IMG/VR virus record: IMGVR_UViG_3300023257_000007
Location: 248,001 to 312,000 of that record
Strand: one strand, 5' to 3'
Length of the DNA: 64,000 bases
Below the pieces are notes generated by a model. The model saw only the letters and a list, made by a program, of their open reading frames with translations, was not told the DNA's origin and made no database searches. Of this stretch, positions 8,913 through 33,822 are shown piece after piece. Position numbers and translations under genes: made by a program. Positions within the stretch are counted from its first letter, which is position 1. Each line of letters starts with the position of its first letter.

Positions 8913-9205
8913 CATTATATATAACAGACATACCTCAAAAAGAAATATTATATCTTGATAAAATAATCAGTGAATATTATAATATGGAAACTATAACTCG
9001 TAGTATTAATAGAATTAATTTCACATTATATGATTATATTTATATAAGTGTTGGTAAAAATTGTACTGAGGGATTATATTATTCAGATATGAATTATTTA
9101 AAACATATTAAAAAACAGAACCATAAAACTATCAATTATATTGATTGGTTGAAAAAGAATAATTTATTCTATAAATTAGAATCAGCCAAATTAGGATTAT
9201 TATGA
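8909..9205 (+). CDS. Small hypothetical protein, C-tag A
   Basis: MTLYITDIPQKEILYLDKIISEYYNM...ESAKLGLL. Confidence 0.85.
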   Translation: MTLYITDIPQKEILYLDKIISEYYNMETITRSINRINFTLYDYIYISVGKNCTEGLYYSDMNYLKHIKKQNHKTINYIDWLKKNNLFYKLESAKLGLL

Positions 9206-11020: not shown

Positions 11021-11057
11021 ATAATTTTTTTCTTTTTATATATTTGTTAGTGTAAAA

Positions 11058-11080
11058 CACACAAGTCTTTAGCTTGTGTG
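11058..11080 (+). other. IS left-end hairpin
   Basis: cacacaag-tctttag-cttgtgtg, perfect 8-bp stem. Confidence 0.8.
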
Positions 11081-11160
11081 ATGTAAGCGATTAAAATGGT
11101 AAAAAAACCATTATATTTTAATTATATATACTTACAGAAGAAAAAAGTTTTTTGTAAAAA

Positions 11161-12327: not shown

Positions 12328-12408
12328 TTCATAGTCTAGAATGGTCAAAAATATTTTAATATTTTGAAAAATTTCCTTATATTAATATTAATTAACTTAA
12401 AACTAAAA

Positions 12409-12729
12409 ATGAAAAGTTTAGTAATAAATATAAAAAATGAAAAACATTGGATAAAAATCCAAAATGAATTAAAAAAACATTTTAAATGGGATGTATCATA
12501 CCGTATTATGATTAAAAAAGATAATTACGAATATTTAAATGAATATAATATTGGTATATCATTAACCACATTTAGTACAATAAAAGAAAAATATAAAATA
12601 CATCTTTGGATAAAAGATGAATATCTTCACACTATTGATGGTGATGATACTAATATTAATGAACACTATTGTAAAGATATAGATGAATTGTTAGAAATGT
12701 ACACCTCACATAAATTAGGATTAATATAA
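12409..12729 (+). CDS. Small hypothetical protein, C-tag A; paralog of 13070 and 13366
   Basis: MKSLVINIKNEKHW...YCKDIDELLEMYTSHKLGLI. Confidence 0.85.
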   Translation: MKSLVINIKNEKHWIKIQNELKKHFKWDVSYRIMIKKDNYEYLNEYNIGISLTTFSTIKEKYKIHLWIKDEYLHTIDGDDTNINEHYCKDIDELLEMYTSHKLGLI

Positions 12730-12730
12730 T

Positions 12731-13069
12731 ATGAATAAAAAAGCAATATTAGCAATAAAAGTCACAAATAAACAAGAATGGTCTGATGTTGAAGATTATT
12801 TCTTAAATAAAGGTATAACTTGGGCATGTCTATCAAATGATAATAAATATGATCCAGACAAAGATTATCTAGGACAATCTTTTCTAACATATATTTCATA
12901 TATAATTGATGATTTATCAGAATATATAATCAGTGCAGAAAAAGATCATTTATATACTATTGATGGAAAACTAATAGAAAGAGTTAAATCTTTTACTTTA
13001 TTTATTGATAAATGGGACAAACCAATATTTGATGAATATATAGAAGGAAATAAAATGGGACTATTATAA
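12731..13069 (+). CDS. Small hypothetical protein, C-tag A
   Basis: Ends EGNKMGLL. Confidence 0.85.
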   Translation: MNKKAILAIKVTNKQEWSDVEDYFLNKGITWACLSNDNKYDPDKDYLGQSFLTYISYIIDDLSEYIISAEKDHLYTIDGKLIERVKSFTLFIDKWDKPIFDEYIEGNKMGLL

Positions 13070-13369
13070 ATGGATAGTTTAGTAATAAATATAGATAATA
13101 AAAAACATTGGAAAGAAGTCCAATGTGAACTATTGGAATGTTTTGAATGGGATAGTTCATATGTTAATATTAAGTACATGTCTGATTATAATCTAGCTGT
13201 ATCATTAACTCAAAGTGATTCACTAAGCGAACAACACAAAATACACCTTTGGATAAAAGATGGTATTATTGATATGAAAGGAGGAAATTACGATAGAGAT
13301 ATATACTACTGCAAAGATGTAGACGAATTATTAGAAATGTACAATTGGCATAAATTAGGATTAATATGA
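13070..13369 (+). CDS. Small hypothetical protein, C-tag A
   Basis: MDSLVINIDNKKHW...NWHKLGLI. Confidence 0.85.
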   Translation: MDSLVINIDNKKHWKEVQCELLECFEWDSSYVNIKYMSDYNLAVSLTQSDSLSEQHKIHLWIKDGIIDMKGGNYDRDIYYCKDVDELLEMYNWHKLGLI

Positions 13370-13650
13370 TATGTTTAATAATAGAAATAGAAAATAAAAA
13401 ACACTGGGAAATTGTTAACAATGAACTAAAGGAACATTTTTCTTGGGCTAATTATTATTATCAAACACAGTATACAGTTGGTTTTAATCTTGTAGTTTCT
13501 TTACCTATAGTAGATACTACGTTCCGTGAAAAATATAAAATATATCATTATTCACATGAAGCATCAATGCATTTATTAGAAAATTGTTTTTGTAAAGATG
13601 TAAACGAACTATTAATAAAATTAACAGCAAACAAATTAGGATTAATATAA
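13366..13650 (+). CDS. Small hypothetical protein, C-tag A
   Basis: MICLIIEIENKKHW...TANKLGLI. Confidence 0.85.
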   Translation: MICLIIEIENKKHWEIVNNELKEHFSWANYYYQTQYTVGFNLVVSLPIVDTTFREKYKIYHYSHEASMHLLENCFCKDVNELLIKLTANKLGLI

Positions 13651-15408: not shown

Positions 15409-15783
15409 ATGAAATATCTAAATAGATATAATGAGTCTAAACCGAATGAAGAAAATCTTTTTAAGTATTTTAAAAATGTTTTGTCTAAATATGAGAATTT
15501 TAAAGAGATTGTGTTTGAAAAATTTCTTGTAACAAATATCAATAATAAATATGATTCTTTTCAATATGCTGCAGAATTTAACACTCTTTATAAACCTGGT
15601 TTAGAAATAGAAATTGAAGATTTATATAAAGTCTCAATATTAGGACTTGAAATTAAAAAAGAATTAAACTTAAAAGAAGTAAGGTTTGAACAACACACAC
15701 ACTCAAGTTATTTTATATTAATTACAAAAGATATATCAGAATATAAAGAAATGATTGAAGGAAATAAAATGGGTTTAATATAA
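15409..15783 (+). CDS. N-tagged, C-tag A hypothetical protein
   Basis: MKYLNRYNES...EGNKMGLI. Confidence 0.85.
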   Translation: MKYLNRYNESKPNEENLFKYFKNVLSKYENFKEIVFEKFLVTNINNKYDSFQYAAEFNTLYKPGLEIEIEDLYKVSILGLEIKKELNLKEVRFEQHTHSSYFILITKDISEYKEMIEGNKMGLI

Positions 15784-16230
15784 ATGAAATATTTAAAAAC
15801 ATATAATCGAATGATAAATGAGATTTCAGTTAACGAAAATCAATTAATTAAACAACATTTAAGTAGTGATGGTAAATCATTAAATATAGGTAATTTAAAT
15901 TTAACTGAATTACCTGAATTACCTGAAGGTTTAGAAAGATTATATTGTACTAATAACCAATTAACTAAATTACCTAAATTACCAAAAGGATTAGAAAGAT
16001 TATATTGTGATAATAACCAATTAACTGAATTACCTGAATTACCTAAAGGATTAAAATATTTATATTGTGGTAATAACAAATTAACTAAATTACCTGAAAT
16101 ACCTAAAGGATTAAGAGAATTATATTGTCATGATAACCAATTACCTTATGATAATTTAGAAAAATATTGGGAATGGTTTTGGAAAGAAAATCCAGACCTT
16201 CACAATGCAAAAAAAATGGGATTATATTAA
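15784..16230 (+). CDS. Short-LRR protein (4 repeats), N-tag and C-tag A
   Basis: MKYLKTYNRMINEISVN...LRRs...NAKKMGLY. Confidence 0.95.
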   Translation: MKYLKTYNRMINEISVNENQLIKQHLSSDGKSLNIGNLNLTELPELPEGLERLYCTNNQLTKLPKLPKGLERLYCDNNQLTELPELPKGLKYLYCGNNKLTKLPEIPKGLRELYCHDNQLPYDNLEKYWEWFWKENPDLHNAKKMGLY

Positions 16231-16835
16231 TGAAGTATTTAAAGACATATGAATCTAAATTATGGGATAAAATTAGTAAAATGAAAAATAAAATCATAAG
16301 AAAGATAATTACTAAGATGAAAAACCTTAGGATAGATACGTATGTTCCTGAAAATATAAAAATTAATGGTAATTATATTTATTATATATATCAACATAAT
16401 TACAATATTGAAATAATGTCATATGATAAAAATGGTAATGAAATATATCTATCATCAAATAGTGATGATATTGGTATAGAAAGTTTATATGAAATATGGC
16501 AAGAAATGAAATATATAACATTAAAAAGTATTATTGAATATTCAATTGAAAGGGATGAATCTTGGATTAATGAAATAGTTGATAAAAATAAAGATAGAAT
16601 AAATTTTGGTAATTTTTATGATGGTGATGATATTATAGACACACATTTAAATCATAAGTATGTCTTAGATGATATATTAAACACATATGAATCTCAAAAA
16701 TATTTATTTACTGAAAGAGAAGATATGATTGTTTGGTTTTTAGATGAATGTGAATCAAATCACATAAAAATGCACGTTGATATAAAAGAAGAATTTAAAA
16801 ATATAATAGAAGCAAGAAAAATGGGATTAGTATAA
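16230..16835 (+). CDS. N-tagged, C-tag A hypothetical protein
   Basis: True start at the TAATG overlap: MKYLKTYES...EARKMGLV. Confidence 0.85.
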   Translation: MKYLKTYESKLWDKISKMKNKIIRKIITKMKNLRIDTYVPENIKINGNYIYYIYQHNYNIEIMSYDKNGNEIYLSSNSDDIGIESLYEIWQEMKYITLKSIIEYSIERDESWINEIVDKNKDRINFGNFYDGDDIIDTHLNHKYVLDDILNTYESQKYLFTEREDMIVWFLDECESNHIKMHVDIKEEFKNIIEARKMGLV

Positions 16836-16836
16836 A

Positions 16837-17680
16837 ATGAAATATTTAAAAACATATTCAGAAAATAAATTAATTAAAGACCATTTAAGTGATGACGGTA
16901 AAAAATTAAATTTTGATTATTTAGATTTAACTGAAATATGCTGATATTTCTGATTACTACGACAATATAATTCTTCTAAATCTTTAGGCAATTCAGGTAA
17001 TTCAGTTAATTGGTTATCATAACAATACAACGTTTCTAACCCTTTAGGTAATTTAGGTAATTCGGTTAATTTGTTATTATCACATTTTAATGTTTTTAAT
17101 CCTTCAGGTAATTCAGGTAATTCGGTTAATTTGTTATTATCACATTTTAATGTTTTTAATCCTTCAGGTAATTCAGGTAATTCGGTTAATTTGTTATCAT
17201 AAACAAATTAACTAAATTACCCGAAATACCTAAAGGGTTAGAATATTTATATTGTCGTGGCAACGGTAAATCATTAAGTTTAGGCCAGTTAAATCTAACT
17301 AAATTACCTGAATTACCTGAAGGATTAGAAAGATTATATTGTTAATGAAAACCAATTAATTAAAGACCATTTAAGTGACAGTATTTTAAAAAAATGTTTA
17401 ACCCAACAAATATAGAAAATGAACTTAAATAACAACGAAGATTTTATCTTATTATGGCATAATAATGGAACTGAAATCTCATTTATCATTCGATTATATG
17501 TCTTTAAATATTTCATTAATATAGTCCCATTTTATTTGCATTATGAAGGTCTGGGTTTTCTTTCCAAAACCATTTCCAATAACCTTCTAAATTATTATAA
17601 GGTAATTGGTTACCACCAACTGCCTGAATTACCTGAAGGATTAGAAAGATTATATTGTAATAATTACTATTATAATGATA
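16837..17680. pseudogene. Scrambled LRR locus: fragments in both orientations
   Basis: + N-tag/N-cap 16837-~16937; inverted LRR modules ~16938-17201; + modules and N-cap pieces ~17202-17380; inverted C-cap/tag/N-tag junction ~17466-17612; + module ~17616-17665. Confidence 0.8.
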
Positions 17681-17681
17681 T

Positions 17682-18161
17682 ATGAGTCTTAATAGTAAAT
17701 ATCCTGAACAATTTAGATATTTTGAAAAAATGATTAATGAAAGCAAACAAATACTCGAATTAATAAAGAAAAGATTATATGAATTAGATCCTGATATGGT
17801 ATTGGCAAATCAACTAGGATTATTTGAAGGGTTAATTACAACATTTTCTAAAGATGATAGAATAGTTTTTGAAGATATTAAAAGAAAAGATGTTATAAGA
17901 GCTGGTGAATTACTACTTAAAGAACTAAATATACAAACAAGGTGGGATGACGGATTTTTAGGGTTCTGTCACAATATTGTAGAATGTGGACCAGATGAAT
18001 TCTATTATATAATGAAAAGTGAATGGGATTCAGCTAGTCTTTATGTTAAAGAAATGCCTTACAAATCACAAGTAAAAGCAACACATTATAACTTCTATGA
18101 CTGGCTTAAAGAAAATGATTTAGAATACTATTTCGACGCAGATCAAATGGGTTTAATTTAA
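17682..18161 (+). CDS. Hypothetical protein with an internal and a terminal C-tag A
   Basis: Internal LANQLGLF; ends DADQMGLI. Confidence 0.75.
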   Translation: MSLNSKYPEQFRYFEKMINESKQILELIKKRLYELDPDMVLANQLGLFEGLITTFSKDDRIVFEDIKRKDVIRAGELLLKELNIQTRWDDGFLGFCHNIVECGPDEFYYIMKSEWDSASLYVKEMPYKSQVKATHYNFYDWLKENDLEYYFDADQMGLI

Positions 18162-18349
18162 GGAAGTTTAATCGAATCAAAATCTATAATTTTCCAAGAA
18201 TAAGGATTTTCACCAATTTTATGATGTTCTTTATACATTATAGTCCTATAAACAACACAACCCTTTCTTGTACATTGTTGTTTATAATTACCATTGTCCC
18301 ATATATGTCCAAACCACTTACACTTTTTTCTTATAAACCATTTCTTCAT
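18158..18349 (-). CDS. Small Cys/His-containing hypothetical protein
   Basis: KCKWFGHIW...QCTRKGC. Confidence 0.6.
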   Translation of the reverse strand: MKKWFIRKKCKWFGHIWDNGNYKQQCTRKGCVVYRTIMYKEHHKIGENPYSWKIIDFDSIKLP

Positions 18350-18382
18350 TAAATTTATATTTATTTTTTGATAAATAGTTTA

Positions 18383-19624
18383 TTAAAAACTAACCCATCT
18401 CGAAAGCGTTAATCTCTCTTTAAATGCCCATTTATTAATTATATTTAACTCATATTTAGAAGGTAATCTATTATTCTTGCCACGAATCTGAGTCACTACT
18501 CTATCACTATTAACCTCAATAGTTAAGAGTTTACTGTCTAATTTTGTTTTGCTATTTACATTCAAAGACCAAATAGAAGTTCTACCACCAGAACATGAAT
18601 TAATATAAGAACTTACACAATGTTTCATATATCTACCCTCATCTAAAATATCACCACTCGTAGTTAATTGATTAATCAAATAAGTCATTTTATTTTCATC
18701 TTTACCAACTAACCAAACATAATTATTAATTGGTAATGGTTGCCATAATTTAGGAACACCTTTTCTAGATACTCTATTAGTTTGGTTATGCCATTTATCA
18801 ACCAATTGTAATAAAGCATCTGGGTTTCTATCTTTCATGTTGAAATTAGGTTTATCAGGTGCTAAAGTAACAAATACATTATTTTGAAAAACTCTTCTTG
18901 TTTCATATTTAATATGATTTATATAATCAACAATAGGGTTATATTTTTCAGGATCTAACATAGGATTATTAATAAAAAATCTTAGAACACTATTCCAAAA
19001 CTCATTATTGCCAAAATCAGAAGCAATTTTAGTAGACATAACACCTTTAACAGATCTCATGTCACCACCCATATCAACAATTTGTCCATATCTTATAGCT
19101 TCCATAGGAAGAAAATCATCTGGTGATTGCATAAAAGCATGAGCCATCTTCTTAGTTAATGGAATCGGTGTTTTAGATTTTCTAATATTTTTACCAACTC
19201 CAATATCAATAAACCATCTAATAGGATTACCTTCAAATTTAATACCACCATTCCAAAACCATGCATTATACATGAATTTAGGCATATCATACTTAACAAA
19301 TAAATGGTCAGCAAGTTCTCTAAATTGTCTATCTCTTGATCTTGATTTCTTTTTCCAAGAACTAATATCACGAATCCAATCTTTTTTGTATTCACAAAAT
19401 TTATGAAGTGATATAACATAATTATAATCACAAAGCAATTCAGCTTTTTGATTAGCAACACAATTTAATAAATTTCTAAAATCTTTATTTTTACCATCTT
19501 TTATTTCACTGTAAATATACTGGTAAGGACAATTATTACCTGTGTAATATTGTGTCTTAGCCAATTCATCAATTAATTTAGACGATGGTCTCTTTAAAAG
19601 TTTATGTAATTTATTATTTCCCAT
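18383..19624 (-). CDS. PcfJ-like domain protein
   Basis: C-terminal EGRYMKHCVSSY...SIWSL...LLTIEV...QIRGKNNRLP signature. Confidence 0.8.
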   Translation of the reverse strand: MGNNKLHKLLKRPSSKLIDELAKTQYYTGNNCPYQYIYSEIKDGKNKDFRNLLNCVANQKAELLCDYNYVISLHKFCEYKKDWIRDISSWKKKSRSRDRQFRELADHLFVKYDMPKFMYNAWFWNGGIKFEGNPIRWFIDIGVGKNIRKSKTPIPLTKKMAHAFMQSPDDFLPMEAIRYGQIVDMGGDMRSVKGVMSTKIASDFGNNEFWNSVLRFFINNPMLDPEKYNPIVDYINHIKYETRRVFQNNVFVTLAPDKPNFNMKDRNPDALLQLVDKWHNQTNRVSRKGVPKLWQPLPINNYVWLVGKDENKMTYLINQLTTSGDILDEGRYMKHCVSSYINSCSGGRTSIWSLNVNSKTKLDSKLLTIEVNSDRVVTQIRGKNNRLPSKYELNIINKWAFKERLTLSRWVSF

Positions 19625-19953
19625 TATAATAATCCTAATTTATAAGCTGTGTTATACTTTTCAATGTTATCATATATTTCAAATAGTTCATCTGCATTAC
19701 TACACATAATTGGATTATATTCACGATCATAATTTATTGTAACATGAGCAATATTGTTTTTTTCAATACCTCCAGTAATATTAACAAGAGCTATAAATAA
19801 ATTATAATTTTCATCATATTCAAAATCATTATAAAGACCACTTAGATCAAATCTTTCTTTAAGTTTAAAAAAATTTTCTTCCCAACATTTCTTATCCGTT
19901 GTATCTATTACTATTAATTCAATCATAACATAAAAATACAATTTTTTTCTCAC
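19624..19953 (-). CDS. Small hypothetical protein, C-tag A
   Basis: Ends TAYKLGLL. Confidence 0.8.
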   Translation of the reverse strand: MRKKLYFYVMIELIVIDTTDKKCWEENFFKLKERFDLSGLYNDFEYDENYNLFIALVNITGGIEKNNIAHVTINYDREYNPIMCSNADELFEIYDNIEKYNTAYKLGLL

Positions 19954-19978
19954 AAATAAAAATAAATATATAATTTTA

Positions 19979-20440
19979 ATGATGTATTTAAAAACATATG
20001 AAAATTTTACTCCTACAGATATCCTTATTAGAAAGATAGATGGTAAAGATATAAAAATAAGTTTGCAATTTATAAAAAATGATAAAGAACTTGCTATTAG
20101 AATACAAGATCTATTAGATCAACACGGTAAATTAGATTTAGATGGTGATCTTGAATTATTAATACCAATAACGGGTTCTGAAATTGTTGATAAAGAAACT
20201 AATATTACTGCACATAGTGATTTAATTGTTAAACCTAATGATAATTGTTTTTTGGAGTTAATTAGATATGAAGATACATATTTTGGTTATACAACAGATT
20301 TCTTTTTTGTTAACGAAAGGGAAAGTTCATGGTGTAGATATAAAGAACTATTAGATCAATATGTAGAAATATGTAGAGAAATAATAATGAATAAAAATGT
20401 AAAAATTAGAATAGAAGCAAATAAAATGGGATTATATTAA
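19979..20440 (+). CDS. N-tagged, C-tag A hypothetical protein
   Basis: MMYLKTYENF...EANKMGLY; AAATATATA at 19964-19972. Confidence 0.85.
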   Translation: MMYLKTYENFTPTDILIRKIDGKDIKISLQFIKNDKELAIRIQDLLDQHGKLDLDGDLELLIPITGSEIVDKETNITAHSDLIVKPNDNCFLELIRYEDTYFGYTTDFFFVNERESSWCRYKELLDQYVEICREIIMNKNVKIRIEANKMGLY

Positions 20441-20919
20441 TGAAATATTTAAAGACATATAGTGAAAATCAATTAATTAAACAATATTTAAGTAATGATG
20501 GTAAAACATTGGATTTAGGTAATTTCAAATTAACAGAATTGCCTGAATTACCTGAAGGATTAAAAGTATTATATTGTTATAATAATCAATTACCTGAATT
20601 ACCTGAATTACCTAAAGGATTAGAATATTTATATTGTTATACTAATAAATTAACTGAGTTACCTGAATTACCTAAAGGGTTAGAAGGATTATATTGTGGT
20701 AATAACCAATTAACTAAATTACCTGAATTACCTAAAGGATTAAAAAGATTATATTGTTATTATAACCAATTAACTAAATTACCTGAATTACCTAAAAGAT
20801 TAAAAGAATTATATTGTTATTATAACCAATTACCTTATGATAATTTAGAAGGTTATTGGAAATGGTTTTGGAAAGAAAACCCAGACCTACATAATGCAAA
20901 TAAAATGGGACTGTATTAA
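20440..20919 (+). CDS. Short-LRR protein (5 repeats), N-tag and C-tag A
   Basis: Repeats and caps as for 3377-3856. Confidence 0.95.
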   Translation: MKYLKTYSENQLIKQYLSNDGKTLDLGNFKLTELPELPEGLKVLYCYNNQLPELPELPKGLEYLYCYTNKLTELPELPKGLEGLYCGNNQLTKLPELPKGLKRLYCYYNQLTKLPELPKRLKELYCYYNQLPYDNLEGYWKWFWKENPDLHNANKMGLY

Positions 20920-21479
20920 TGAAATATTTAAAGACATATAATCGAATGATAAATGAGATTTCAGTTAATGAAAATCTGATTAACCGTTTAAGTGATGATG
21001 GTAAAAATTTAAATCTAAATAGTTTAAATTTAACCAAATTGCCTGAATTACCTAAAGGGTTAGAAAAATTAATGTGTTATAATAATCAATTAACTGAATT
21101 ACCTGAATTACCAAAAGGATTAGAAATGTTATATTGTGACAACAACAAATTAATTGAATTACCTGAACTACCAAAAGGGTTAGAAATATTAGATTGTGAT
21201 TATAACAAACTAACTGAATTACCTGAATTACCTAAAGGGTTAGAAAGATTATATTGTGGTAATAATAAATTAACAGAATTACCTGAAATACCTAAAGGGT
21301 TAGAAAGATTATATTGTGGTAATAACCAATTAACTGAATTACCTGAATTATCTAAAAGATTAGAATATTTAAATTGTTATAATAACCAATTACCTTATAA
21401 TAATTTAGAAGAATATTGGGAATGGTTTTGGAAAGAAAACCCAGACCTACATAATGCAAATAAAATGGGATTGTATTAA
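20919..21479 (+). CDS. Short-LRR protein (6 repeats), N-tag and C-tag A
   Basis: Repeats and caps; two blocks identical to gene 3377-3856. Confidence 0.95.
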   Translation: MKYLKTYNRMINEISVNENLINRLSDDGKNLNLNSLNLTKLPELPKGLEKLMCYNNQLTELPELPKGLEMLYCDNNKLIELPELPKGLEILDCDYNKLTELPELPKGLERLYCGNNKLTELPEIPKGLERLYCGNNQLTELPELSKRLEYLNCYNNQLPYNNLEEYWEWFWKENPDLHNANKMGLY

Positions 21480-21494
21480 AACTTAGAGAAAAAA

Positions 21495-21504
21495 TTAATA
21501 TATA
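21495..21504 (+). promoter_or_regulatory. TTAATATATA promoter-like motif
   Basis: Exact motif 6 nt upstream of ATG 21511. Confidence 0.55.
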
Positions 21505-21510
21505 ATTTTA

Positions 21511-22000
21511 ATGATGTATTTAAAGACATATGAAAATTTTAATGATATTGAAAATTATTTCAAATTGCATAATAAAATCAAAAAATCTAAGAAAAGACTT
21601 AAAAAATATAAGAAAGAAAAGAAACTATCCAAAAAAAATGGTTTATAAATTAATAATCAAAAAAGCTAGAGAAATACTTGATAAATACGGTACACCTTAT
21701 TTATATGATAGGGAATATGAAAATACCGTGAAAATACCTATAACACCAGTTAAAATTGAAGGTGCAAAATATGATAGAATATTAATTTGGTTTGAAACTA
21801 AAAAAGAAATTATTGGATCAAATTCATTTGATTTTGATGATGAAAATATTGGTTTTGATAATGGTTATGAATATTATGAAGAATGGTGTTCATTAGATTC
21901 ATTTAGAAATTCAATTAAAGCATTAACAATAATGTATGAAAATTTATTTGATGAAGATTTACCAATTAAATTAGAAGCAAATAAATTTGGATTGTTATAA
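21511..22000 (+). pseudogene. N-tagged, C-tag A gene with a probable frameshift
   Basis: MMYLKTYENFNDIENYFKLHNKIK from 21511; body and EANKFGLL in the 21530 frame. Confidence 0.7.
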
Positions 22001-22402
22001 TATACCAAGGTTTTTACCCTCTTCGTAAGCTCTTACAATTTTAGAATATTTAGGATCATTTTTTAGATTTTTATTAAAACCAACCCTACTATCAATTAAT
22101 TCATCAAAACCATTATCAATTAATATCTTTTGAATATTAAAATCAGTCATTGTAGCATCACTCATTATTTTAGGATCTGAACCTTTCTTAATTAAATATT
22201 CAAAAACCTCATCATCATAATAAGCAAGATCTAAAACATTATTATAAGTACTTTCATAACTTACATCAGCACCTTTATTAATAAACATTTTAATTAATTC
22301 AAAATCTTCTGTTTTTAAAGCCAATAAAAACAAATCATTTAAATCTTCTTGATCAATGTTATTGCTCTCTAAAAATAATTTATATGTTTGTAGTTTTACC
22401 AT
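21995..22402 (-). CDS. Ankyrin-repeat-like protein, N-tag-like start and C-tag A
   Basis: ALKTEDFELIKMFINKGADVS and EYLIKKGSDP ankyrin-like units; MVKLQTYKLFLES...EGKNLGIL. Confidence 0.7.
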   Translation of the reverse strand: MVKLQTYKLFLESNNIDQEDLNDLFLLALKTEDFELIKMFINKGADVSYESTYNNVLDLAYYDDEVFEYLIKKGSDPKIMSDATMTDFNIQKILIDNGFDELIDSRVGFNKNLKNDPKYSKIVRAYEEGKNLGIL

Positions 22403-23268
22403 GACAGTCTTTCTCTTGTTATTTCATTAAGATATTTATCTTCAATTGTACCATAAATATAATCGTAATTTGGTGCACTAAATTTATTTAAGTCATGTTC
22501 TTTCATAATATACAACCAATCACCATAGTATTCTTCAATAAAATCAATTTCACCTCTATAAAAATAATCATCAATTAATTCACTTTTAATATCGTCCCAA
22601 TCTACATTCAATTTAACCTTTATAGTTTCGTTTTTCAACCATTCAAATTTACCAAAAGCATCTTCAAAAGCATCTTTAATCTTATCATAAACTTCATTAT
22701 AATCAGCATTTTCTTGTGTTTCAAGAATAGCATGATTCAAAATGGTTTTTAATTCATCTGTTTCACTTAACTGTTCACTTAACTTTATAGAATCTTCAAT
22801 AATTATATCATTATCTACTATTTTAGTATTATTCTTTGTGATTTTAATTTCATCAATCATTTCACCTTTTTTATTACAATATTCTATAATAGCTTTCAAG
22901 GTTTCATTATCATAAGAACTCCACCAATCACTAATATTTGCATCATAATCATAAACAGGGTCCCAATCATAATCATGACCTAATATTTCACTCTCATATT
23001 TCTCTAAACCAAAATCATCAAAATTACCAATATAATAAAAATCTCCATTTTCATAATCTAAGTCCATTCTCTTAGCAAACTCTTCAGATGTTATATAATC
23101 TTCTTCCCATAAAAGAATATCTCCTAACTCATTACAATCTCTTGTATCTATTTCATGTTCTTTTACTAATTTGGTGATTTCTTCCTTAGTAAAGGGTATA
23201 TTGGATGATTTAGATTTCCAAATTATAGAAAATATGAGATTTGCATATTGATTTTCATATTCGTTCAT
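22396..23268 (-). CDS. Acidic hypothetical protein
   Basis: 290 aa; TTAATATATA at 23275-23284 upstream. Confidence 0.8.
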   Translation of the reverse strand: MNEYENQYANLIFSIIWKSKSSNIPFTKEEITKLVKEHEIDTRDCNELGDILLWEEDYITSEEFAKRMDLDYENGDFYYIGNFDDFGLEKYESEILGHDYDWDPVYDYDANISDWWSSYDNETLKAIIEYCNKKGEMIDEIKITKNNTKIVDNDIIIEDSIKLSEQLSETDELKTILNHAILETQENADYNEVYDKIKDAFEDAFGKFEWLKNETIKVKLNVDWDDIKSELIDDYFYRGEIDFIEEYYGDWLYIMKEHDLNKFSAPNYDYIYGTIEDKYLNEITRERLSW

Positions 23269-23288
23269 AAATAATATATATTAAAAAT

Positions 23289-23684
23289 TTAAAATAGATT
23301 CATCTTCTTAGCCTCTAAATATGAATTAACTTCTTTTAACATTTCATCTTCTTTATAAATAATAGTTAAAGAATCTAATTCAAAATTTTCCAGATCCACA
23401 ACCGGAAAAGTTTCATTAATTTGAATTAATAATTCACTTAAATCAACTTCATATGTCATTAACATATCACTCCACACATTTAAAAAAATTGGTTTATTAA
23501 TATCTTGTTCTATCTTAGTTCTATAAGTTGCACCAGCAGTTCTATAAGTAATAGGATGAGTATCTCTATTAAATGTCAAAAAACCCTTTTCAATTAATAG
23601 TTTTTGTTTATACATAAAATCAGACTCATTGTCACATTTAATAGTAAATAAGTAATCATATGAATGTCCTTTAATTATTATCAT
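23289..23684 (-). CDS. Hypothetical protein, C-tag A
   Basis: Ends EAKKMNLF. Confidence 0.8.
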   Translation of the reverse strand: MIIIKGHSYDYLFTIKCDNESDFMYKQKLLIEKGFLTFNRDTHPITYRTAGATYRTKIEQDINKPIFLNVWSDMLMTYEVDLSELLIQINETFPVVDLENFELDSLTIIYKEDEMLKEVNSYLEAKKMNLF

Positions 23685-24042
23685 TTCTAATTCTATTTAA
23701 TTTTAATTTTCTATAAAGTTTTGTAAATATTGGATTATTTATAGATAATACGTCTAATATCTTTATTAAGACATCATCAAAATCTATATCTGTAAAATGT
23801 ACTTCTCCCCCTATTATATCAACAATAACGAAGAAAGATATAGAAGCAGATAATGTTAAAATATGTTTATTATCATCATAAACATATAATATTTGACTAT
23901 ATGGATAACCTTCGTTAAATGAAACTTTTAATTTTTTAGAATGAATTTTTTGTGTCAAATAATCATAACAATCAAATAGAAGTTTTTGATGTGTAATTAA
24001 AGATTCTGAAACTATTTCGTTTATTTGTTTATTAGTCTCCAT
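23671..24042 (-). CDS. Hypothetical protein, C-tag B
   Basis: Ends YRKLKLNRIRNDNN. Confidence 0.8.
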   Translation of the reverse strand: METNKQINEIVSESLITHQKLLFDCYDYLTQKIHSKKLKVSFNEGYPYSQILYVYDDNKHILTLSASISFFVIVDIIGGEVHFTDIDFDDVLIKILDVLSINNPIFTKLYRKLKLNRIRNDNN

Positions 24043-24049
24043 TTTTCAA

Positions 24050-24334
24050 TTATAATAACCCTAATTTTGAAGCAGTTGATAATTCAATTAAACCTAGTTC
24101 TTCAATATCATCAAAAGTTAATAATGGGACTTTAAATTCACGATTATTTGCATCACATTGACCACCTGTTATTATTTTATCATTTAATGAAACACCAACA
24201 GCACCAGGAAATCCACAAAATGTCCAATATTTTTCAATACGTCCACTTAATCGTGTATATCCGTCAGCATATAATGATTTTAATAGAGTTTTTTGTTCTT
24301 CTGCATTTTCACACAATATGTATATTTTATCCAT
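24050..24334 (-). CDS. Small hypothetical protein, C-tag A; paralog of 24698-24979
   Basis: EEQK.LLKSL.A.GY...FPGA...IGGQCDANN; ends TASKLGLL. Confidence 0.85.
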   Translation of the reverse strand: MDKIYILCENAEEQKTLLKSLYADGYTRLSGRIEKYWTFCGFPGAVGVSLNDKIITGGQCDANNREFKVPLLTFDDIEELGLIELSTASKLGLL

Positions 24335-24701
24335 TTTTCACTCTTTCCAATTTTTGTTTTCTATTCATCCTTTCATATTCTTTATCTTTACAAAAAATAT
24401 TTACACATTCTTCTAAAACCTGTTCTTTATTAATACAAGATATAATAAAAGATTTCCAAGATATATTATATCTACCAAATTCACAACCATCTTCTAATAA
24501 AATGACTTTTTTAATTTCTAAATCAGTCCAAAATATTGAAAATGGTTCCATATTAAAATATTTTTTTGGTAGTTCTTTTGATAAATCAATATCAAGTTTC
24601 ATTGTTCGACCAATACATATCTTATCATTTTTGAAATTCATTTTATAATCTTTAGGTAAAATAATATTATCCTTTAAATAGTCATATACTTTATTTATCA
24701 T
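24327..24701 (-). CDS. Hypothetical protein, C-tag B
   Basis: MINKVYDY...NRKQKLERVKNG. Confidence 0.8.
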   Translation of the reverse strand: MINKVYDYLKDNIILPKDYKMNFKNDKICIGRTMKLDIDLSKELPKKYFNMEPFSIFWTDLEIKKVILLEDGCEFGRYNISWKSFIISCINKEQVLEECVNIFCKDKEYERMNRKQKLERVKNG

Positions 24702-24979
24702 AATAATCCAAGTTTTGAAGCTGTATATAAACAATTAATACCTATTTCATTTAACTCTTCAGTATTTAAAAGTTCATTTTTAAAATTGTGATTATTTGCA
24801 TCACATTGACCTCCTAATATAATTTTTTCATCTAATCTAATATGAATAGCACCTGGGAAAATACTAAATTTCCAATAAGTCATAGTTTTGTCACTTCTTC
24901 GATAACCATTTGCAAATAGAGATTTTAAAACCATCTTTTGTTCTTTTTCATTCTCAACTAAAATCCATCTTTCAATCAT
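24698..24979 (-). CDS. Small hypothetical protein, C-tag A
   Basis: Ends TASKLGLL. Confidence 0.85.
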   Translation of the reverse strand: MIERWILVENEKEQKMVLKSLFANGYRRSDKTMTYWKFSIFPGAIHIRLDEKIILGGQCDANNHNFKNELLNTEELNEIGINCLYTASKLGLL

Positions 24980-25044
24980 TTTTTATTCTATTTTATCTGT
25001 TTTATAATAAATTTATAATTAAAATTTAAAAATGTTTTAATTTT

Positions 25045-25054
25045 TTAATATATA
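25045..25054 (+). promoter_or_regulatory. TTAATATATA promoter-like motif
   Basis: Exact motif 7 nt upstream of ATG 25062. Confidence 0.55.
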
Positions 25055-25061
25055 ATAGGTA

Positions 25062-25235
25062 ATGAAATATTTAAAATATTATGAAAGTTCAAAATCTTTT
25101 GTAAATCCATTTGGTGAAAATAGATTTTTGTATTGTTATAAAGGTACTAAAAGTGATGTGAAATCTCATATTAATATAGATGAAGGTAATATTTATAATC
25201 AAAAAAGATGGGACTATTATGATAAAAGATTTTAA
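25062..25235 (+). pseudogene. Internally deleted gene: N-tag in frame, C-tag A out of frame
   Basis: MKYLKYYESSKSF... (57 aa); SKKMGLL-stop encoded in another frame at 25199-25222. Confidence 0.65.
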
Positions 25236-25656
25236 AAAGTTTTCAGAATGGTATAATAAATCAAATGATGAAATAGATCAAATGAAACATAAAGCTAATA
25301 AATTAGAAATAGAAGTAACTAAAAATAAACAATATTTTGACAATATAATTTATAACAAATTAAAAGAAATGCGAAAATATGCTATAAGAGAGAATAAAAA
25401 TGACATATTAACAATAAATTTACCAATTGAAATAGATGGAGAAAAATATGAATGTTTAAATATAACTTATGATATTAATTATAACGAAATAGATATATCA
25501 GCTGGTGAAAAATATGCATGGGTATGTTTTATTGAAAATAATGATAATGAAATAAATATTGATAGTATATATGAAGATTATAGAAAATTATATAATTATT
25601 TGATAAGTGATAACTTAAATGAATTTTTAGAAGCAAAAAGAATGGGACTATTATGA
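25219..25656 (+). CDS. Hypothetical protein, N-tag-like start, C-tag A; family with 25666, 26013, 26509, 63679
   Basis: MIKDFKKFSEW...EAKRMGLL. Confidence 0.8.
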   Translation: MIKDFKKFSEWYNKSNDEIDQMKHKANKLEIEVTKNKQYFDNIIYNKLKEMRKYAIRENKNDILTINLPIEIDGEKYECLNITYDINYNEIDISAGEKYAWVCFIENNDNEINIDSIYEDYRKLYNYLISDNLNEFLEAKRMGLL

Positions 25657-25665
25657 TAGAAGATT

Positions 25666-26013
25666 TTGATAAATATATTATATAAGAAAAAAATGGATAA
25701 AATCAAATTGAAATTAGAACAATCCTTTGTTGATAAAATTCTAAGTTTGAAAAAATATGCTAAAAAAGACGATAATGATGAATTAATGTTAATTATAGAT
25801 AAAGAAATATATGAATCTAAAAAATTATATATTTGTTATGGTTTCGTTACTATGGTTTATTGTGATGTTGGTGGTTTAATTACACTAAATCATTATAATA
25901 AAATAGAATATGATAGAGATAACAAATATGAAACATTATCAACATTATATAAATATTTTATGGATGATGATATTGTAAAACAGTTAGAAGCAAAAAAAAT
26001 GGGATTAATGTAA
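25666..26013 (+). CDS. Hypothetical protein, C-tag A
   Basis: Ends EAKKMGLM. Confidence 0.8.
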   Translation: MINILYKKKMDKIKLKLEQSFVDKILSLKKYAKKDDNDELMLIIDKEIYESKKLYICYGFVTMVYCDVGGLITLNHYNKIEYDRDNKYETLSTLYKYFMDDDIVKQLEAKKMGLM

Positions 26014-26507
26014 TGAGTAAAATTGATAAATATATTGATTTTGTTAAGAATATGAAAAATCTTGAATCTGATTGCGAAAAAGCAAAATTAAAATACGATG
26101 AAATGCATAAGCAATATATTGATAAAATAGCTGAATTAAATAAAAAAGGATTCAAAATGAAAGATTATTATAGCGATATATTAGAAAGAATATATTCACT
26201 TAAAAAATATTTAAAACCTAATAAAAAATATAATGATTATGAAATAACATTTCCAATTGATATTAAATATGAAGGAAAAAATTATATAAATTGCACAATA
26301 TCTTTTGAACGTAAAGATTCAGACTATTTTTCAGGTTGTTACTTAGGTACAAGTAATAAAACAATTGATAATGATCTATTTAATTATATTTCCGAAAAAG
26401 AAATAAGATGGAATGAAGATGAAATATTATTTATAAAGTTTTATAAAGCTCTAATGAGTCCTGACGTAGAAAAGTATTTAGAAGCAAAAAGAATGGGATT
26501 ATTATAA
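26013..26507 (+). CDS. Hypothetical protein, C-tag A
   Basis: Ends EAKRMGLL. Confidence 0.85.
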   Translation: MSKIDKYIDFVKNMKNLESDCEKAKLKYDEMHKQYIDKIAELNKKGFKMKDYYSDILERIYSLKKYLKPNKKYNDYEITFPIDIKYEGKNYINCTISFERKDSDYFSGCYLGTSNKTIDNDLFNYISEKEIRWNEDEILFIKFYKALMSPDVEKYLEAKRMGLL

Positions 26508-26508
26508 T

Positions 26509-26985
26509 ATGGAAAACTACACAGAATATATTAAAAAACTTGAAAAAGAAAAAAGGATTCTTAATAAAGAATTTGATAAGATTTCAAAAAAGATAAATAA
26601 TGCTAAACAAGAAATGGCTGTTACAATAATTGATAAAGTGAAAAGTTTTAAAATTATAGCAAAAAAAATAGATTTTGAATATAGTAGTTATAATTGTTTC
26701 AATATACCAAAACAAATAAATGGTTTAAAGAGTGATTATATTAAAAAACATGATGGTTTAGTAATATTTTTTGATGAATATCCTAACATAGAAGTCTATA
26801 CTTATTATATTAATGATGAAAAACCTTACTATGATTGTGAATTATTTAGTTTTATTGATAATAAAACAAAATTGAGATTTACCGATATTAAAAATACACC
26901 AGAAAATATAGAAATAATATATAACTATTTCATGAGCAAAGATCTAGATTTTTATTTAAATTCAGGAAAAATGGGCTTATTATAA
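26509..26985 (+). CDS. Hypothetical protein, C-tag A
   Basis: Ends NSGKMGLL. Confidence 0.85.
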   Translation: MENYTEYIKKLEKEKRILNKEFDKISKKINNAKQEMAVTIIDKVKSFKIIAKKIDFEYSSYNCFNIPKQINGLKSDYIKKHDGLVIFFDEYPNIEVYTYYINDEKPYYDCELFSFIDNKTKLRFTDIKNTPENIEIIYNYFMSKDLDFYLNSGKMGLL

Positions 26986-27329
26986 TGAAATACCTTAAAA
27001 CATATAATGAAAATTCAGTAGATACAAATCGAGTGATATTTGGTATATTTATTGATAATAAAGGAGACTTTGCAAAAGTACAAAAAACTTTGATTAATTT
27101 AGGTTATGAAATAAGTTCATGGTATAAAAGTAAACATTGGTTTCCTGATTTAAAATTTGAAGATGATATACTTGACTATAATTCACTACCAATAAAACCA
27201 GTTTATATTACAATATGGAGAGATGATAAAAGATGGACTATGATAAATGAAATAAATGAAAAAATCATAATCGTTGATGTTGAAGATGTTCATAAATATA
27301 TCGAAGCTCTAAAACTAAACATTTTATAA
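26985..27329 (+). CDS. N-tagged, C-tag A hypothetical protein
   Basis: MKYLKTYNEN...EALKLNIL. Confidence 0.85.
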   Translation: MKYLKTYNENSVDTNRVIFGIFIDNKGDFAKVQKTLINLGYEISSWYKSKHWFPDLKFEDDILDYNSLPIKPVYITIWRDDKRWTMINEINEKIIIVDVEDVHKYIEALKLNIL

Positions 27330-27338
27330 TTTCTATAT

Positions 27339-27348
27339 TTAATATATA
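27339..27348 (+). promoter_or_regulatory. TTAATATATA promoter-like motif
   Basis: Exact motif upstream of the 27369 operon. Confidence 0.5.
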
Positions 27349-27368
27349 ATGGAAATAATCATACAAGA

Positions 27369-27863
27369 ATGAAAAAATTAATATACATACTATTCTTAAT
27401 ACTACTACCAATTTTCTCTTTAGCACAAAAAGAGAACTATTACCAACATAATACAGAAAAACAAATAAGATTTTATAAACATAAAGATTGGACATTAGAA
27501 AATGAAGGAGAATGGGGTTCTTTTTATTGGAAGATTATTAGATCATCTAAAGATTCAGATGATTATTACTGGTATTATGTATATTTATATTCAAACTCAT
27601 ATTTTAACACAAAAACAAATAATGAATATGACAAAGCTATTACATATATTAAAAATATGGTTATAACTATGTATATTTATAAAAACAAAAAAGATAAATT
27701 AATCTACATTAATAATATACCGATTAAATTACCTTATGTTGTATGTGATTATAAACTAGATGAAAGTCTATATGTTGCTTATTTTTATTCAACATCAAAA
27801 TACAATTCGTTTAATCTTAAGTTTGAAGGAGCAACCGCTTTTGATTATTCTGAAACAAAATAA
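27369..27863 (+). CDS. Secreted protein with a Sec signal peptide
   Basis: MKKLIYILFLILLPIFSLA|Q: basic n-region, hydrophobic h-region, SLA cleavage site. Confidence 0.75.
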   Translation: MKKLIYILFLILLPIFSLAQKENYYQHNTEKQIRFYKHKDWTLENEGEWGSFYWKIIRSSKDSDDYYWYYVYLYSNSYFNTKTNNEYDKAITYIKNMVITMYIYKNKKDKLIYINNIPIKLPYVVCDYKLDESLYVAYFYSTSKYNSFNLKFEGATAFDYSETK

Positions 27864-27871
27864 AAAATATC

Positions 27872-28252
27872 ATGAAACATTTATATGAATGGAATGTATT
27901 TAAAAATAAAAATAAATATGAAGAAGGTGATAAACTTATGAATAGACTTATTGATATTATTAAAAATGAAGATATATCTATCAAACATAGTGGTGGATAT
28001 AATATAGAATTGGATAATAAAATATATAGTTTTGCAAGAAGTGGTCGTAGTTGTTGGGTGACTAAGTATGATAATAATCAAAATAATGGAAAATTTTGGC
28101 AAGGTGAACCGGAATCTAAATATGATTTTTCTGTTAAAATATGGAAAGAATTAGACAATTTACACAAAGAACAAAATAAACCAGATTTATCAAATGATTT
28201 GGATAATTTAACTGATGAAAATAGAACAGCAAAAAAGATGGGATTATTATGA
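27872..28252 (+). CDS. Hypothetical protein, N-tag-like start, C-tag A
   Basis: MKHLYEWN...TAKKMGLL. Confidence 0.85.
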   Translation: MKHLYEWNVFKNKNKYEEGDKLMNRLIDIIKNEDISIKHSGGYNIELDNKIYSFARSGRSCWVTKYDNNQNNGKFWQGEPESKYDFSVKIWKELDNLHKEQNKPDLSNDLDNLTDENRTAKKMGLL

Positions 28253-28686
28253 GAAAAATTAGAAAAATAAACGAAGCGTACTGGCAAAGTGACATGAGCC
28301 CAGAAAAAAGAAGAAAATTAGCTGAAGAACTAATTAAATATTTAAGAGAAGAAGTTAAAGAAAAAGACGACAAAGAAAAGCTAGGATTATTATTTATGCA
28401 TTTCTGTGGTGATAGAGGATTGTCATTTACTGAAGCAAGAGATCTTGATAAAGAAGTGGGTGACATGAGTGCAGAAATGTTAATGTTAGGAGATTTATCA
28501 GAATATATTGAAAAAATAATTAAAGAATTATTTATAAAATATGGTAATGGTAAAGATGATATTTATGATAAAACAAATTTCTTAAAATATTTAAATAAAA
28601 AAATTGATTGGTTGTCTAATATTTATGATTCACCATCTGAAATAGAAAATCTTGAAAAAGTAAGAAATCGTTTTGAAAATTATTAA
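28249..28686 (+). CDS. Hypothetical protein, N-tag-like start
   Basis: MRKIRKINEA...; internal EKLGLLF. Confidence 0.8.
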   Translation: MRKIRKINEAYWQSDMSPEKRRKLAEELIKYLREEVKEKDDKEKLGLLFMHFCGDRGLSFTEARDLDKEVGDMSAEMLMLGDLSEYIEKIIKELFIKYGNGKDDIYDKTNFLKYLNKKIDWLSNIYDSPSEIENLEKVRNRFENY

Positions 28687-28986
28687 ATGAAACATTTAAA
28701 GACATATAATGAAAATCAATTTATTAAAGACCATTTAAGTGGTGATGGTAAATCATTAGATTTAGATAAGTTAAATCTAACTGAATTACCTAAATTACCT
28801 GAAGGATTAGAAAGATTAGATTGTGATAATAACCTATTAACAGAATTACCTGAATTACCAAAAGGCTTAGAAAGATTATATTGTTATGATAACAAATTAC
28901 CTTATAATGATTTAAAAGGATATTGGAAATGGTTCTGGGAACAAAATCCAGACCTTTATAATGCAAATAAAATGGGATTATATTAA
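28687..28986 (+). CDS. Short-LRR protein (2 repeats), N-tag and C-tag A
   Basis: Minimal member with both caps. Confidence 0.95.
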   Translation: MKHLKTYNENQFIKDHLSGDGKSLDLDKLNLTELPKLPEGLERLDCDNNLLTELPELPKGLERLYCYDNKLPYNDLKGYWKWFWEQNPDLYNANKMGLY

Positions 28987-29405
28987 TGAAATATTTAAAA
29001 ACATATTCAGAAAATAAATTAATTAAAGACAATTTAAGTAATAATGGTAAAACATTAGATTTAAGTGATTTAAATTTAAAAGAATTACCTGAATTACCTG
29101 AAGGATTAGAAAGATTAGATTGTGATAATAACAGATTAACTGAATTACCTGAATTACCTGAAGGATTAAGATATTTAGATTGTGATAATAATCAATTAAC
29201 TGAATTACCTGAATTACCAAAAGGATTAGAATCAATATGGTGCTATAATAATAAATTAACTGAATTACCTGAATTACCTAAAGGGTTAAAAATATTAGAT
29301 TGTGATTATAACAAATTACCTTATAATGATTTAGAAGAATATTGGGAATGGTTTTGGAAGGAAAATCCAGATTTAAATCAAGCAAACAAATTAGGATTAT
29401 ATTAA
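28986..29405 (+). CDS. Short-LRR protein (4 repeats), N-tag and C-tag A
   Basis: MKYLKTYSEN...QANKLGLY. Confidence 0.95.
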   Translation: MKYLKTYSENKLIKDNLSNNGKTLDLSDLNLKELPELPEGLERLDCDNNRLTELPELPEGLRYLDCDNNQLTELPELPKGLESIWCYNNKLTELPELPKGLKILDCDYNKLPYNDLEEYWEWFWKENPDLNQANKLGLY

Positions 29406-29839: not shown

Positions 29840-30127
29840 ATGAAAATTAAAAGATTTAACGAAAATTATAAACATAAATCAGTAGTGTACGGTACTAAAA
29901 ATAAAGAAATACCTGAATTTTTAGGCAAGTTTGCTGACTATATAATAGAAAATATTGATATATTACATGAATGGTATATTGATAGTGAAAATTATGTTAA
30001 TGAAAATTATATTGTTTTTGAATTAGTAGAACAATACGATGTTGATTTATGTATTAAAAATTTCACAAAATTACAAGAATATACTCTTATGATCCTGATA
30101 AATTTAAAAAAGATATGTATTTATTAG
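29840..30127 (+). CDS. N-tag-like hypothetical protein
   Basis: MKIKRFNENY... Confidence 0.65.
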   Translation: MKIKRFNENYKHKSVVYGTKNKEIPEFLGKFADYIIENIDILHEWYIDSENYVNENYIVFELVEQYDVDLCIKNFTKLQEYTLMILINLKKICIY

Positions 30128-33364: not shown

Positions 33365-33822
33365 TGAAATATTTAGAAACATATATGCACAAGTTTTATA
33401 TTGATAATTTTAAATTAGAGGATGATAAAGAATTATATCTTGAATTTAATAAATTAATAGAAAAGATTAAAAAAGAATGGCCCTCAGAAAAATTATGGTT
33501 AGCACATGAACTAGGTTTACACCCTACATCTAAAACTATTGATAAATTATTATATGAAAGATGCGTGGAACTAATTAATAAATATGGTAATTTAAATTAT
33601 TTTAATGGAGTTGCTGAAATGGTTAAAATACCTACTTATATTGACATGTATATATTTAAAAATAGATATGATAATATAGGCATTGGTCATGCTTATGAAC
33701 CTGGGACCGATTGGTATTTTTATGATAAAATGAAAAATACTGAAAAAACAAAAATCAGAAATTTTATAATGAGCGATGAATTAGAACCAATGTTAGAAGC
33801 TGAAAAAATGGGAATATTATGA
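33364..33822 (+). CDS. N-tagged, C-tag A hypothetical protein
   Basis: MKYLETY...EAEKMGIL. Confidence 0.85.
   Translation: MKYLETYMHKFYIDNFKLEDDKELYLEFNKLIEKIKKEWPSEKLWLAHELGLHPTSKTIDKLLYERCVELINKYGNLNYFNGVAEMVKIPTYIDMYIFKNRYDNIGIGHAYEPGTDWYFYDKMKNTEKTKIRNFIMSDELEPMLEAEKMGIL

Follow-up and report, generated by a model that had tools for sequence, protein, structure and literature searches.

The window examined here is a stretch of 64,000 nucleotides with a GC content of 25 %, corresponding to bases 248001-312000 of a virus contig of 348,222 bp from IMG/VR (IMGVR_UViG_3300023257_000007). Among numerous small genes it carries a series of genes for leucine-rich repeat (LRR) proteins, several of which are joined to a neighbour by a recurrent 44-base junction spanning the end of one gene and the beginning of the next (Table 1). 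A sequence-only reading had located a degenerate form of this 44-mer at five places; exactly five matches were recovered, all at these places, and none in 100 dinucleotide-preserving shuffles. As read from open reading frame (ORF) coordinates and an alignment of nine junctions, the 44-mer comprises the eight final codons of a gene (…A-N/K-K-M-G-L-Y) with its stop, a one-base overlap (TAATG) and the seven first codons of the following gene (M-K-Y-L-K-T-Y). More degenerate junctions of the same build are also listed in Table 1.

The window is part of a very large tailed phage (~600 kb, 25 % GC), because PHROG matches to a tail sheath and a baseplate wedge and Pfam matches to a ribonucleotide reductase and a fused type II topoisomerase were encountered. 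Three further public contigs belong to the same phage (99.9-100 % identity) and extend the record to ~599 kb. Genome-wide counts refer to these ~599 kb, pieced together from overlapping public records, with 898 called ORFs.

At the scale of the genome, the two halves of the junction corresponded to two terminal motifs. The C-terminal one (C-tag), [K/R/Q/N..]-[M/L/F/I]-[G/N]-[L/I/V]-[L/Y/I/V/M/F], ended 147 ORFs, about one in six (~16 %), while the N-terminal one (N-tag), M-K-[Y/H]-L-K-T-[Y/F]-(N/E)-E, opened 58, about one in fifteen; 44 of the latter, about three quarters, displayed both. A strict C motif was found 107 times at C-ends versus 13 times internally, and a strict N motif 44 times at starts versus four times internally. 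In its extended form the C-tag reads [Y/L/I/F]-[I/L/F/Y/V]-E-[A/G/S]-x-K-[M/L]-G-L-[L/I/Y/M/F]-stop, with a small residue at position -7 in 136 out of 147 cases. C-tagged proteins were small (up to ~350 aa, median 124 aa). Most tagged proteins lacked a Pfam family, the exceptions being the LRR paralogs and a weak ankyrin match, and a homology search with the tagged ORFan at 24698-24979 returned only a self-match. Tagged genes were packed head to tail with stop/start overlaps of the form TAATG or ATGA. A full-text literature search for the tag strings found no description in phages; the two-ended tagging system appears to be undescribed, and appears to be a more interesting result than the notion of excisable cassettes put forward by the first reading.

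The 44-mer is probably the DNA footprint of these two protein end-motifs lying back to back, rather than an independent element: the same ~45 bases arise whenever an N-tagged gene follows a C-tagged one. Homology around four of the five copies extended far beyond 44 bp, which the first reading had overlooked (100-450 nt; identity was 62-90 % across repeat families of 300 and 252 nt, 83-90 % in those of 252 nt and 98 % in a patch of 144 nt), and the near-identity of the five copies results from LRR paralogy, through the Y-ending version of the tail, plus one neighbour gene. This neighbour, gene A, is indeed, as had been noticed earlier, a non-LRR gene with an LRR-type GLY tail situated directly upstream of an LRR gene. 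Y-ending tags were displayed by 11 of 12 LRR genes versus one of 135 non-LRR tagged genes, namely gene A (Fisher p = 1e-14), whose final 24 nt are identical to the end of the first LRR gene at junction copy 5. No hairpin or attC-like structure was found at the junction, the folding energy being no better than that of shuffled sequences (z +0.4 to +2.1, i.e. less structured).

Judged from residue and codon patterns, the end motifs are protein tags with conserved residues. Selection acts on the peptides, since the tags are strictly terminal, their synonymous sites vary and distant relatives keep lineage-specific variants. Tag codons for Lys, Glu, Tyr and Leu(-4) followed genome codon usage. LRR homologues from other metagenomes (45-63 % identity) retained the heads MKYLKTYNE, MKHLKTYEQ or MKYIKTYEQ, and their tails were lineage-specific (ANKMGLI, AAKDLGLW, AAKQMGLY, ANKFNI). 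In a distant relative, a phage contig of 126 kb, unrelated small genes of the pattern MKYIKKFE…(K/N)KFNI were lined up in long arrays; their synonymous codons were free, all three stop codons were used and stop/start spacing was variable.

Table 1. Positions of the junctions, genes and other features discussed (numbered from the first base of the window unless a contig or genome is named)
Feature	Position	Strand	Remarks
Junction copy 1	16207-16250	+	LRR gene 15784-16230 (…AKKMGLY-stop) overlaps tagged non-LRR gene 16230-16835 (MKYLKTYES…)
Junction copy 2	17496-17539 (stop/start at 17516)	-	LRR-gene fragments on both sides
Junction copy 3	20417-20460	+	Gene A (…IEANKMGLY) overlaps LRR gene 20440-20919
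Junction copy 4	20896-20939	+	LRR gene 20440-20919 overlaps LRR gene 20919-21479
Junction copy 5	28963-29006	+	LRR gene 28687-28986 overlaps LRR gene 28986-29405
More degenerate junctions	near 15760-15804, 16812-16857, 26962-27005, 33799-33839		Same build
LRR gene	15784-16230	+	148 aa; 20-residue LPELP-type repeats; N-tag and GLY C-tag
LRR paralogs	3377-3856 (-), 20440-20919, 20919-21479, 28687-28986, 28986-29405, 33819-34538		
Gene A	19979-20440	+	ORFan, 153 aa; non-LRR; …KMGLY tail
52-nt direct repeat, copy 1	19958-20009	+	Promoter-like AATATATAA 5 nt before ATG, then codons MMYLKTYENF
52-nt direct repeat, copy 2	21490-21541	+	96 % identical to copy 1; heads gene B
Gene B	21511-22000	+	N-tag in one frame, C-tag in another
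144-nt module	20823-20966; 17469-17612 (inverted, 98 %); third locus outside the window (94 %)		
Scrambled LRR-gene remnant	16836-17680	mixed	Genes broken
Pieces of the remnant	16812-16948 (+); 16951-17211 (-), 17191-17364 (+); 17469-17612 (-); 17615-17664 (+)		Head; LRR units; junction patch; unit
Tandem array	25180-26985	+	Four paralogous small genes with ends …LEAK(R/K)MGL(L/M) or …SGKMGLL; at 26985, a non-LRR-type fused C-tag/N-tag junction follows
Similar tandem arrays	8586-9205, 12364-13650, 24050-24979 (-)		
MK(I/V)xRFNE(S/N) starts	29840-30127, 28249-28686; relative L057:16260-20203		
N-tagged type IB topoisomerase	L048:15369-16754		On a second contig of this phage, obtained from the same sample as the window
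TnpB gene	11161-12327	+	Helix-turn-helix, IS605 OrfB and Cas12f-like TNB domains; within a 1.3-kb repeated unit (~11030-12333)
TnpB/IS605-OrfB gene	57212-58264	-	Helix-turn-helix, OrfB_IS605 and Cas12f-like TNB domains
Acb3-like gene	39401-40216	-	271 aa
tRNA-synthetase-like gene	9521-10348	+	275 aa
Signal-peptide-like gene	27369-27863	+	164 aa
Homing-endonuclease-like genes	G002:1788-3440 (-), G002:8010-9752 (+); window's genome 7642-9219, 10105-11751, others		~550 aa

Other gene starts were observed beside the main N-tag. A minor class of nine genes starts with MKxYxxF(I/L)NE. A third recurrent start, MK(I/V)xRFNE(S/N), was found both in this phage, where 12 ORFs start with MKIR, and in a distant relative, which suggests more than one class of N-terminal leader. 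The N-tag is not limited to small ORFans, since a type IB topoisomerase of 461 aa without C-tag also bears it (start MKYLKTYNENEE). In KFNI-type tags of relative L057 (e.g. ends at 667, 2080 and 10450), Asn is mostly encoded by AAC despite a very AT-rich genome. With AAT at this position, the stop codon would be spanned by the promoter-like string AATATATAA; codon choice here may thus serve to avoid internal promoters or, in some genes, to generate them.

The C-tag and N-tag could act as address labels read by one common partner of phage or host origin. Most likely, they would serve to load a large set of accessory or effector proteins into the prohead, from which these would be ejected, in the manner of the internal-protein leader of phage T4. 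By this analogy, capsid loading can be put forward only tentatively as the function of the tags; reading by one common partner is more likely than capsid loading specifically. The head module, located on one of the added contigs, comprises a major capsid protein, a head maturation protease and a portal; the protease gene adjoins the capsid gene and matched phrog_207 (1.3e-29) and, weakly, the T4 gp21 family (Pfam S77, 23.5 bits, under the cut-off). The [I/L]-x-E-[A/G/S] part of the C-tag resembles what we take to be the cleavage motif of gp21-type head proteases. In the AlphaFold2 model of the LRR protein encoded directly downstream of gene A (20440-20919), the first four residues were poorly defined (predicted local distance difference test score, pLDDT, below 50), while the C-tag terminated the last cap helix and added a tail of three residues, so both ends are predicted to be accessible to a partner.

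Recombination would then be a side effect: a RecA/UvsX-like recombinase, whose gene is present in the phage outside the window (RecA family, 46.9 bits), would act wherever homology is long enough, mainly in LRR bodies and caps and only occasionally in the tags. Such exchange would have produced the tandem arrays and conversion tracts as well as the scrambled remnants and a cap-junction-leader module that is portable. A few codon choices (GGA, A-ending codons at C-tag position -7, ACA) would be held by the needs of the overlapping downstream start.

Several observations weigh against this reading. Gly(-3) of the C-tag was encoded by GGA in 91 of 133 tags versus 40 expected, and Thr6 of the N-tag by ACA in 47 of 49 versus 26 expected; the reading explains these nucleotide-level constraints only loosely. 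Tags were uniform within the genome and differed between lineages, for which gene conversion among tags could be an alternative that favours the cassette view. Capsid loading is the weakest step, since it relies on the analogy with T4. Co-expression with the head genes is not evident either, as the spacing of a promoter-like motif differs. This motif, TAATATATA(A/G), precedes 161 genes in two spacing classes (e.g. at 19966-19974 and 21498-21506 of the window): in structural genes (capsid, protease, sheath) 18-24 nt separate its end from the ATG, versus 4-6 nt in 46 other genes, many of which are the first genes of tagged arrays. Genes of the 4-6 nt class may have nearly leaderless transcripts.

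The first reading had regarded the fused tags as homologous-recombination handles, any gene between two junctions being excisable, duplicable or swappable while keeping its signals and its translational coupling (a gene accordion). That the tags were selected for this purpose is quite improbable, even though a number of traces agree with it. Gene A, which immediately precedes an LRR gene, has an LRR-type tail consistent with a single old crossover within a C-tag. A 144-nt module, in which the LRR cap and the junction are followed by 48 nt from the start of the next gene (leader MKYLKTYNRMINEISV), occurs in three copies, 94-98 % identical, that head three unrelated bodies; junction copy 2 lies within the inverted one. 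A pair of 52-nt repeats, the only place where the promoter-like motif is joined to the N-tag, brackets a 1.5-kb block composed of gene A and two LRR genes. The non-LRR gene following junction copy 1 is situated between two junctions, inside what appears to be a former LRR pair. Adjacent same-strand paralogs made up 11 of 66 pairs of tagged genes versus 6 of 345 pairs of untagged small genes, an eleven-fold excess (p = 5e-6). The homogeneity of tags per genome and the presence of a RecA/UvsX-like recombinase point in the same direction, and in T4-type phages short conserved cassettes are known to drive shuffling and mini-circle formation (PMC2839356).

The junction itself was nevertheless unsupported as a preferred breakpoint, as were the genes as excisable cassettes. 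The recombination tracts either ended in LRR units or caps or ran across it. It was a passenger inside the 144-nt tract. A tract of ~230 nt with 100 % identity between two LRR paralogs at different loci stopped 47 nt before the stop codon, and beyond it their tags and junctions differed. In the scrambled remnant, a patchwork of LRR pieces in both orientations, the switches were located inside LRR units. Among the fused C-tag/N-tag junctions of the phage (n = 22), the median longest exact match was 11 nt and only two out of 231 pairs reached at least 30 nt; tags are therefore generally poor substrates for homologous recombination, the LRR set being exceptional. Synonymous variation in the tags speaks against homogenisation at the DNA level, and the junction forms no hairpin. 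The claim that integrases and recombinases are lacking from the window held for site-specific ones, as Phage_integrase (PF00589) and Resolvase (PF00239) gave zero matches in three records totalling ~600 kb; the window does, however, contain two TnpB/IS605-OrfB genes.

Comparison between assemblies did not reveal gain or loss of genes. In ten independent contigs from several samples and assemblers, the context of gene A and the gene order around window positions 14-21 kb were identical, one 60-nt LRR unit being the sole difference, and two strains of a distant relative were collinear over 14 kb. Relatives were either clonal copies (100 % or 99.8-99.9 % identity) or very distant phages. Exact-pattern scans with the junction and the LRR cap yielded same-phage contigs only, and a search of IMG/VR and JGI metagenomes with a PcfJ-like gene yielded only the same strain and a single untagged relative at 31 %. 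A PcfJ-like gene is also present in the 595-kb phage LR756511, but that genome has 43 % GC and lacks the tags. No reliable deletion or circle joints were found in the sequencing runs, which were kept as k-mer contigs only; the candidates had sides of 20-44 nt and were not counted, because such sides can come from paralogs. An apparent structural variant between contigs G001 and L048 (99.95 % identical over 10.4 kb, parting near the end of an LRR gene) was rejected. In G001, two loci are joined within a ~230-nt exact repeat of two LRR paralogs; as the join occurs in one assembly only, it stems either from recombination or from a switch made by the assembler. A depth hole, considered as a sign of alternative forms, was at odds with a 99.9 % identical contig obtained from the same sample as the window. 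Overall, genome-wide terminal tags, overlapping stops and starts, homologous exchange, tandem amplification and the single crossover in a C-tag all fit the cassette idea, which is thereby partly supported, as incidental homologous shuffling.

A second alternative, that the junction is kept mainly as an RNA-level termination-reinitiation (translational coupling) element with incidental peptides, is very unlikely. In its favour, a distant relative sampled at another site retains the TAATG overlap and the core ATGGGATTATATTAATGAAATAT, and the junction has unusually little structure. Sequences ahead of start codons are rich in A and seldom contain Shine-Dalgarno motifs, so local sequence may matter for initiation. 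GGA at Gly(-3) was also more frequent in tags with a coupled downstream gene (53/67, 79 %) than in those without (38/66, 58 %; p = 0.009; background 30-39 %). Half of the C-tags with Gly (66/133), however, had no coupled downstream gene, N-tags also occurred on the first genes of arrays behind promoter-like motifs, residues were held while synonymous sites varied, and both stop codon and spacing were variable. A Shine-Dalgarno-like or TURBS-like (termination upstream ribosome-binding site) function of UGGGA was not general, since genes coupled behind untagged genes showed no enrichment of GGA (8 % vs 72 %), and GGA was found upstream of only 14 % of genes. We infer that the codon biases are an adaptation of tag codons to the overlapping downstream start site. 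Plain paralogy, in which the repeat would merely reflect recent tandem duplication of LRR genes, can draw on the LRR sequence flanking four of the five copies (83-98 % identity over 100-450 nt) and on the near confinement of the Y-ending version to LRR genes, but it is scarcely credible and is refuted as a complete account by the genome-wide counts, head and tail motifs being borne by over 130 non-LRR ORFan genes whose bodies are unrelated, by their terminal position and by the tags of distant phages.

LRR proteins of the window are composed of bacterial LPX-type repeats (LxxLPxLPxxL, 20 residues; Pfam LRR_4 at 2.3e-25), which give the DNA a period of 60 nt. For the protein encoded downstream of gene A, a regular solenoid with one strand every 20 residues was predicted (AlphaFold2, pLDDT 93). 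The NEL E3-ligase domain of the IpaH/SspH family was absent from these proteins of 99-239 aa, which consist only of LRRs and a 30-residue two-helix cap; the name "SspH2" given to LRR homologues in source annotations stems from the LRR part alone. Look-alikes of gene A in the ESM Atlas had scores below 0.9 and were uninformative. Besides LRR pieces, the scrambled remnant holds short patches copied from ~7 kb upstream of the window. One contig (L054) was without one 60-nt LRR unit of the remnant array (17022-17197), either because the copy number varies or because two near-identical units were collapsed during assembly. The frame change in gene B occurs at a run of eight A residues (21629-21637); a pseudogene, slippage or an error in sequencing could each account for it. 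In an HD-domain gene, too, an A run differs by one base between contigs, so that the gene is split in one of them and intact in three others.

Sequencing runs containing the phage were mainly salt-lake metagenomes, with a few marine ones. The 1.3-kb unit surrounding the first TnpB gene recurs (99.9 % identity) where another of the phage's contigs ends; public assemblies of the phage break at this unit, which is separate from the junction system. Several copies of a homing-endonuclease-like family (phrog_3339, DUF7487) flank the genes for capsid, protease and portal as well as a split-looking DNA polymerase B region. The accessory region further includes an untagged anti-defence gene with an Acb3 match (Pfam, 2e-37), Acb3 being an inhibitor of the cyclic-oligonucleotide-based antiphage signalling system (CBASS). 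Another protein displays only the catalytic domain of a class I Glu/Gln tRNA-synthetase (8.5e-47), and its end (…NNGLL) represents a partial C-tag. A third, devoid of tags, has a clear N-terminal segment resembling a signal peptide; together with the A-rich, Shine-Dalgarno-poor starts, this hints at a possible Bacteroidota-type host.

Huge phages harbor hundreds of ORFan genes with obscure roles and origins, and here ~16 % of all ORFs display a common C-motif. As the tagged set includes LRR and ankyrin-like proteins and lies beside anti-defence genes, a common fate for a large accessory proteome is suggested. If tags also guided recombination, this would explain the build-up and turnover of large arrays of small genes. 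A broader proposal, which we regard as rather unlikely, is that a clade of very large AT-rich phages carries a two-ended, lineage-specific address, composed of an N-terminal heptapeptide and a C-terminal pentapeptide, on more than 100 unrelated small accessory proteins per genome. It would be read by one machine, for instance for loading into the giant capsid, with codons doubling as slots in which RecA-type recombination duplicates, swaps and homogenises genes. If true, this would constitute a cassette system without need for a site-specific recombinase.

Among known systems, encapsulin cargo-loading peptides are short, C-terminal, rich in Gly and Leu/Ile and present on diverse cargo, and they dock inside a shell of HK97 fold; they offer a possible model for the C-tag by analogy, although the motif is not the same. 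Poxvirus "genomic accordions", reportedly described by Elde et al. in 2012, are said to be recombination-driven tandem amplifications of accessory or host-range genes. The enrichment of tandem paralogs among tagged genes is reminiscent of them, whereas between-sample variation in copy number concerned one 60-nt LRR unit only. Integron cassettes (attC, IntI) are likewise promoterless single-gene units in arrays with a recurring boundary sequence; here, in contrast, the repeat is coding, attC-like hairpins are absent and no tyrosine recombinase is encoded in ~600 kb.

Internal proteins of phage T4 are diverse defence proteins with the capsid targeting sequence (CTS) as their sole common part (PMC3012670), and in both systems a short N-terminal leader is found on unrelated, fast-evolving small phage proteins. 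IPII and IPIII of T4 (NC_000866) both start with MKTYQEFIAEA, with which the main N-tag (MKYLKTYNE) has only MK, TY and E in common; the nine MKxYxxF[I/L]NE genes are closer, as are neighbours in relatives (MKTYNQFINE, MKTYKKFINE). A putative gp21-like head protease gene next to the capsid gene is a further likeness; in the T4 type, the gp21 prohead protease removes the leader after Glu. Unlike T4, which has a handful of such genes and no second tag, the present phage has ~150 tagged genes and an additional C-terminal tag.

Promoter early stem-loop (PeSL) cassettes of T4-type phages (Arbiol et al. 2010, PMC2839356; PMC4122927) are also short conserved repeats between small non-essential genes in hyperplastic regions. 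They are composed of an intergenic promoter and a stem-loop terminator, whereas the junction described here is coding, contains a stop/start overlap and lacks a stem-loop. Since PeSLs mediate insertion, deletion, replacement and mini-circle formation via homologous recombination (PMC2839356; PMC4122927), they are the closest precedent for the cassette idea.

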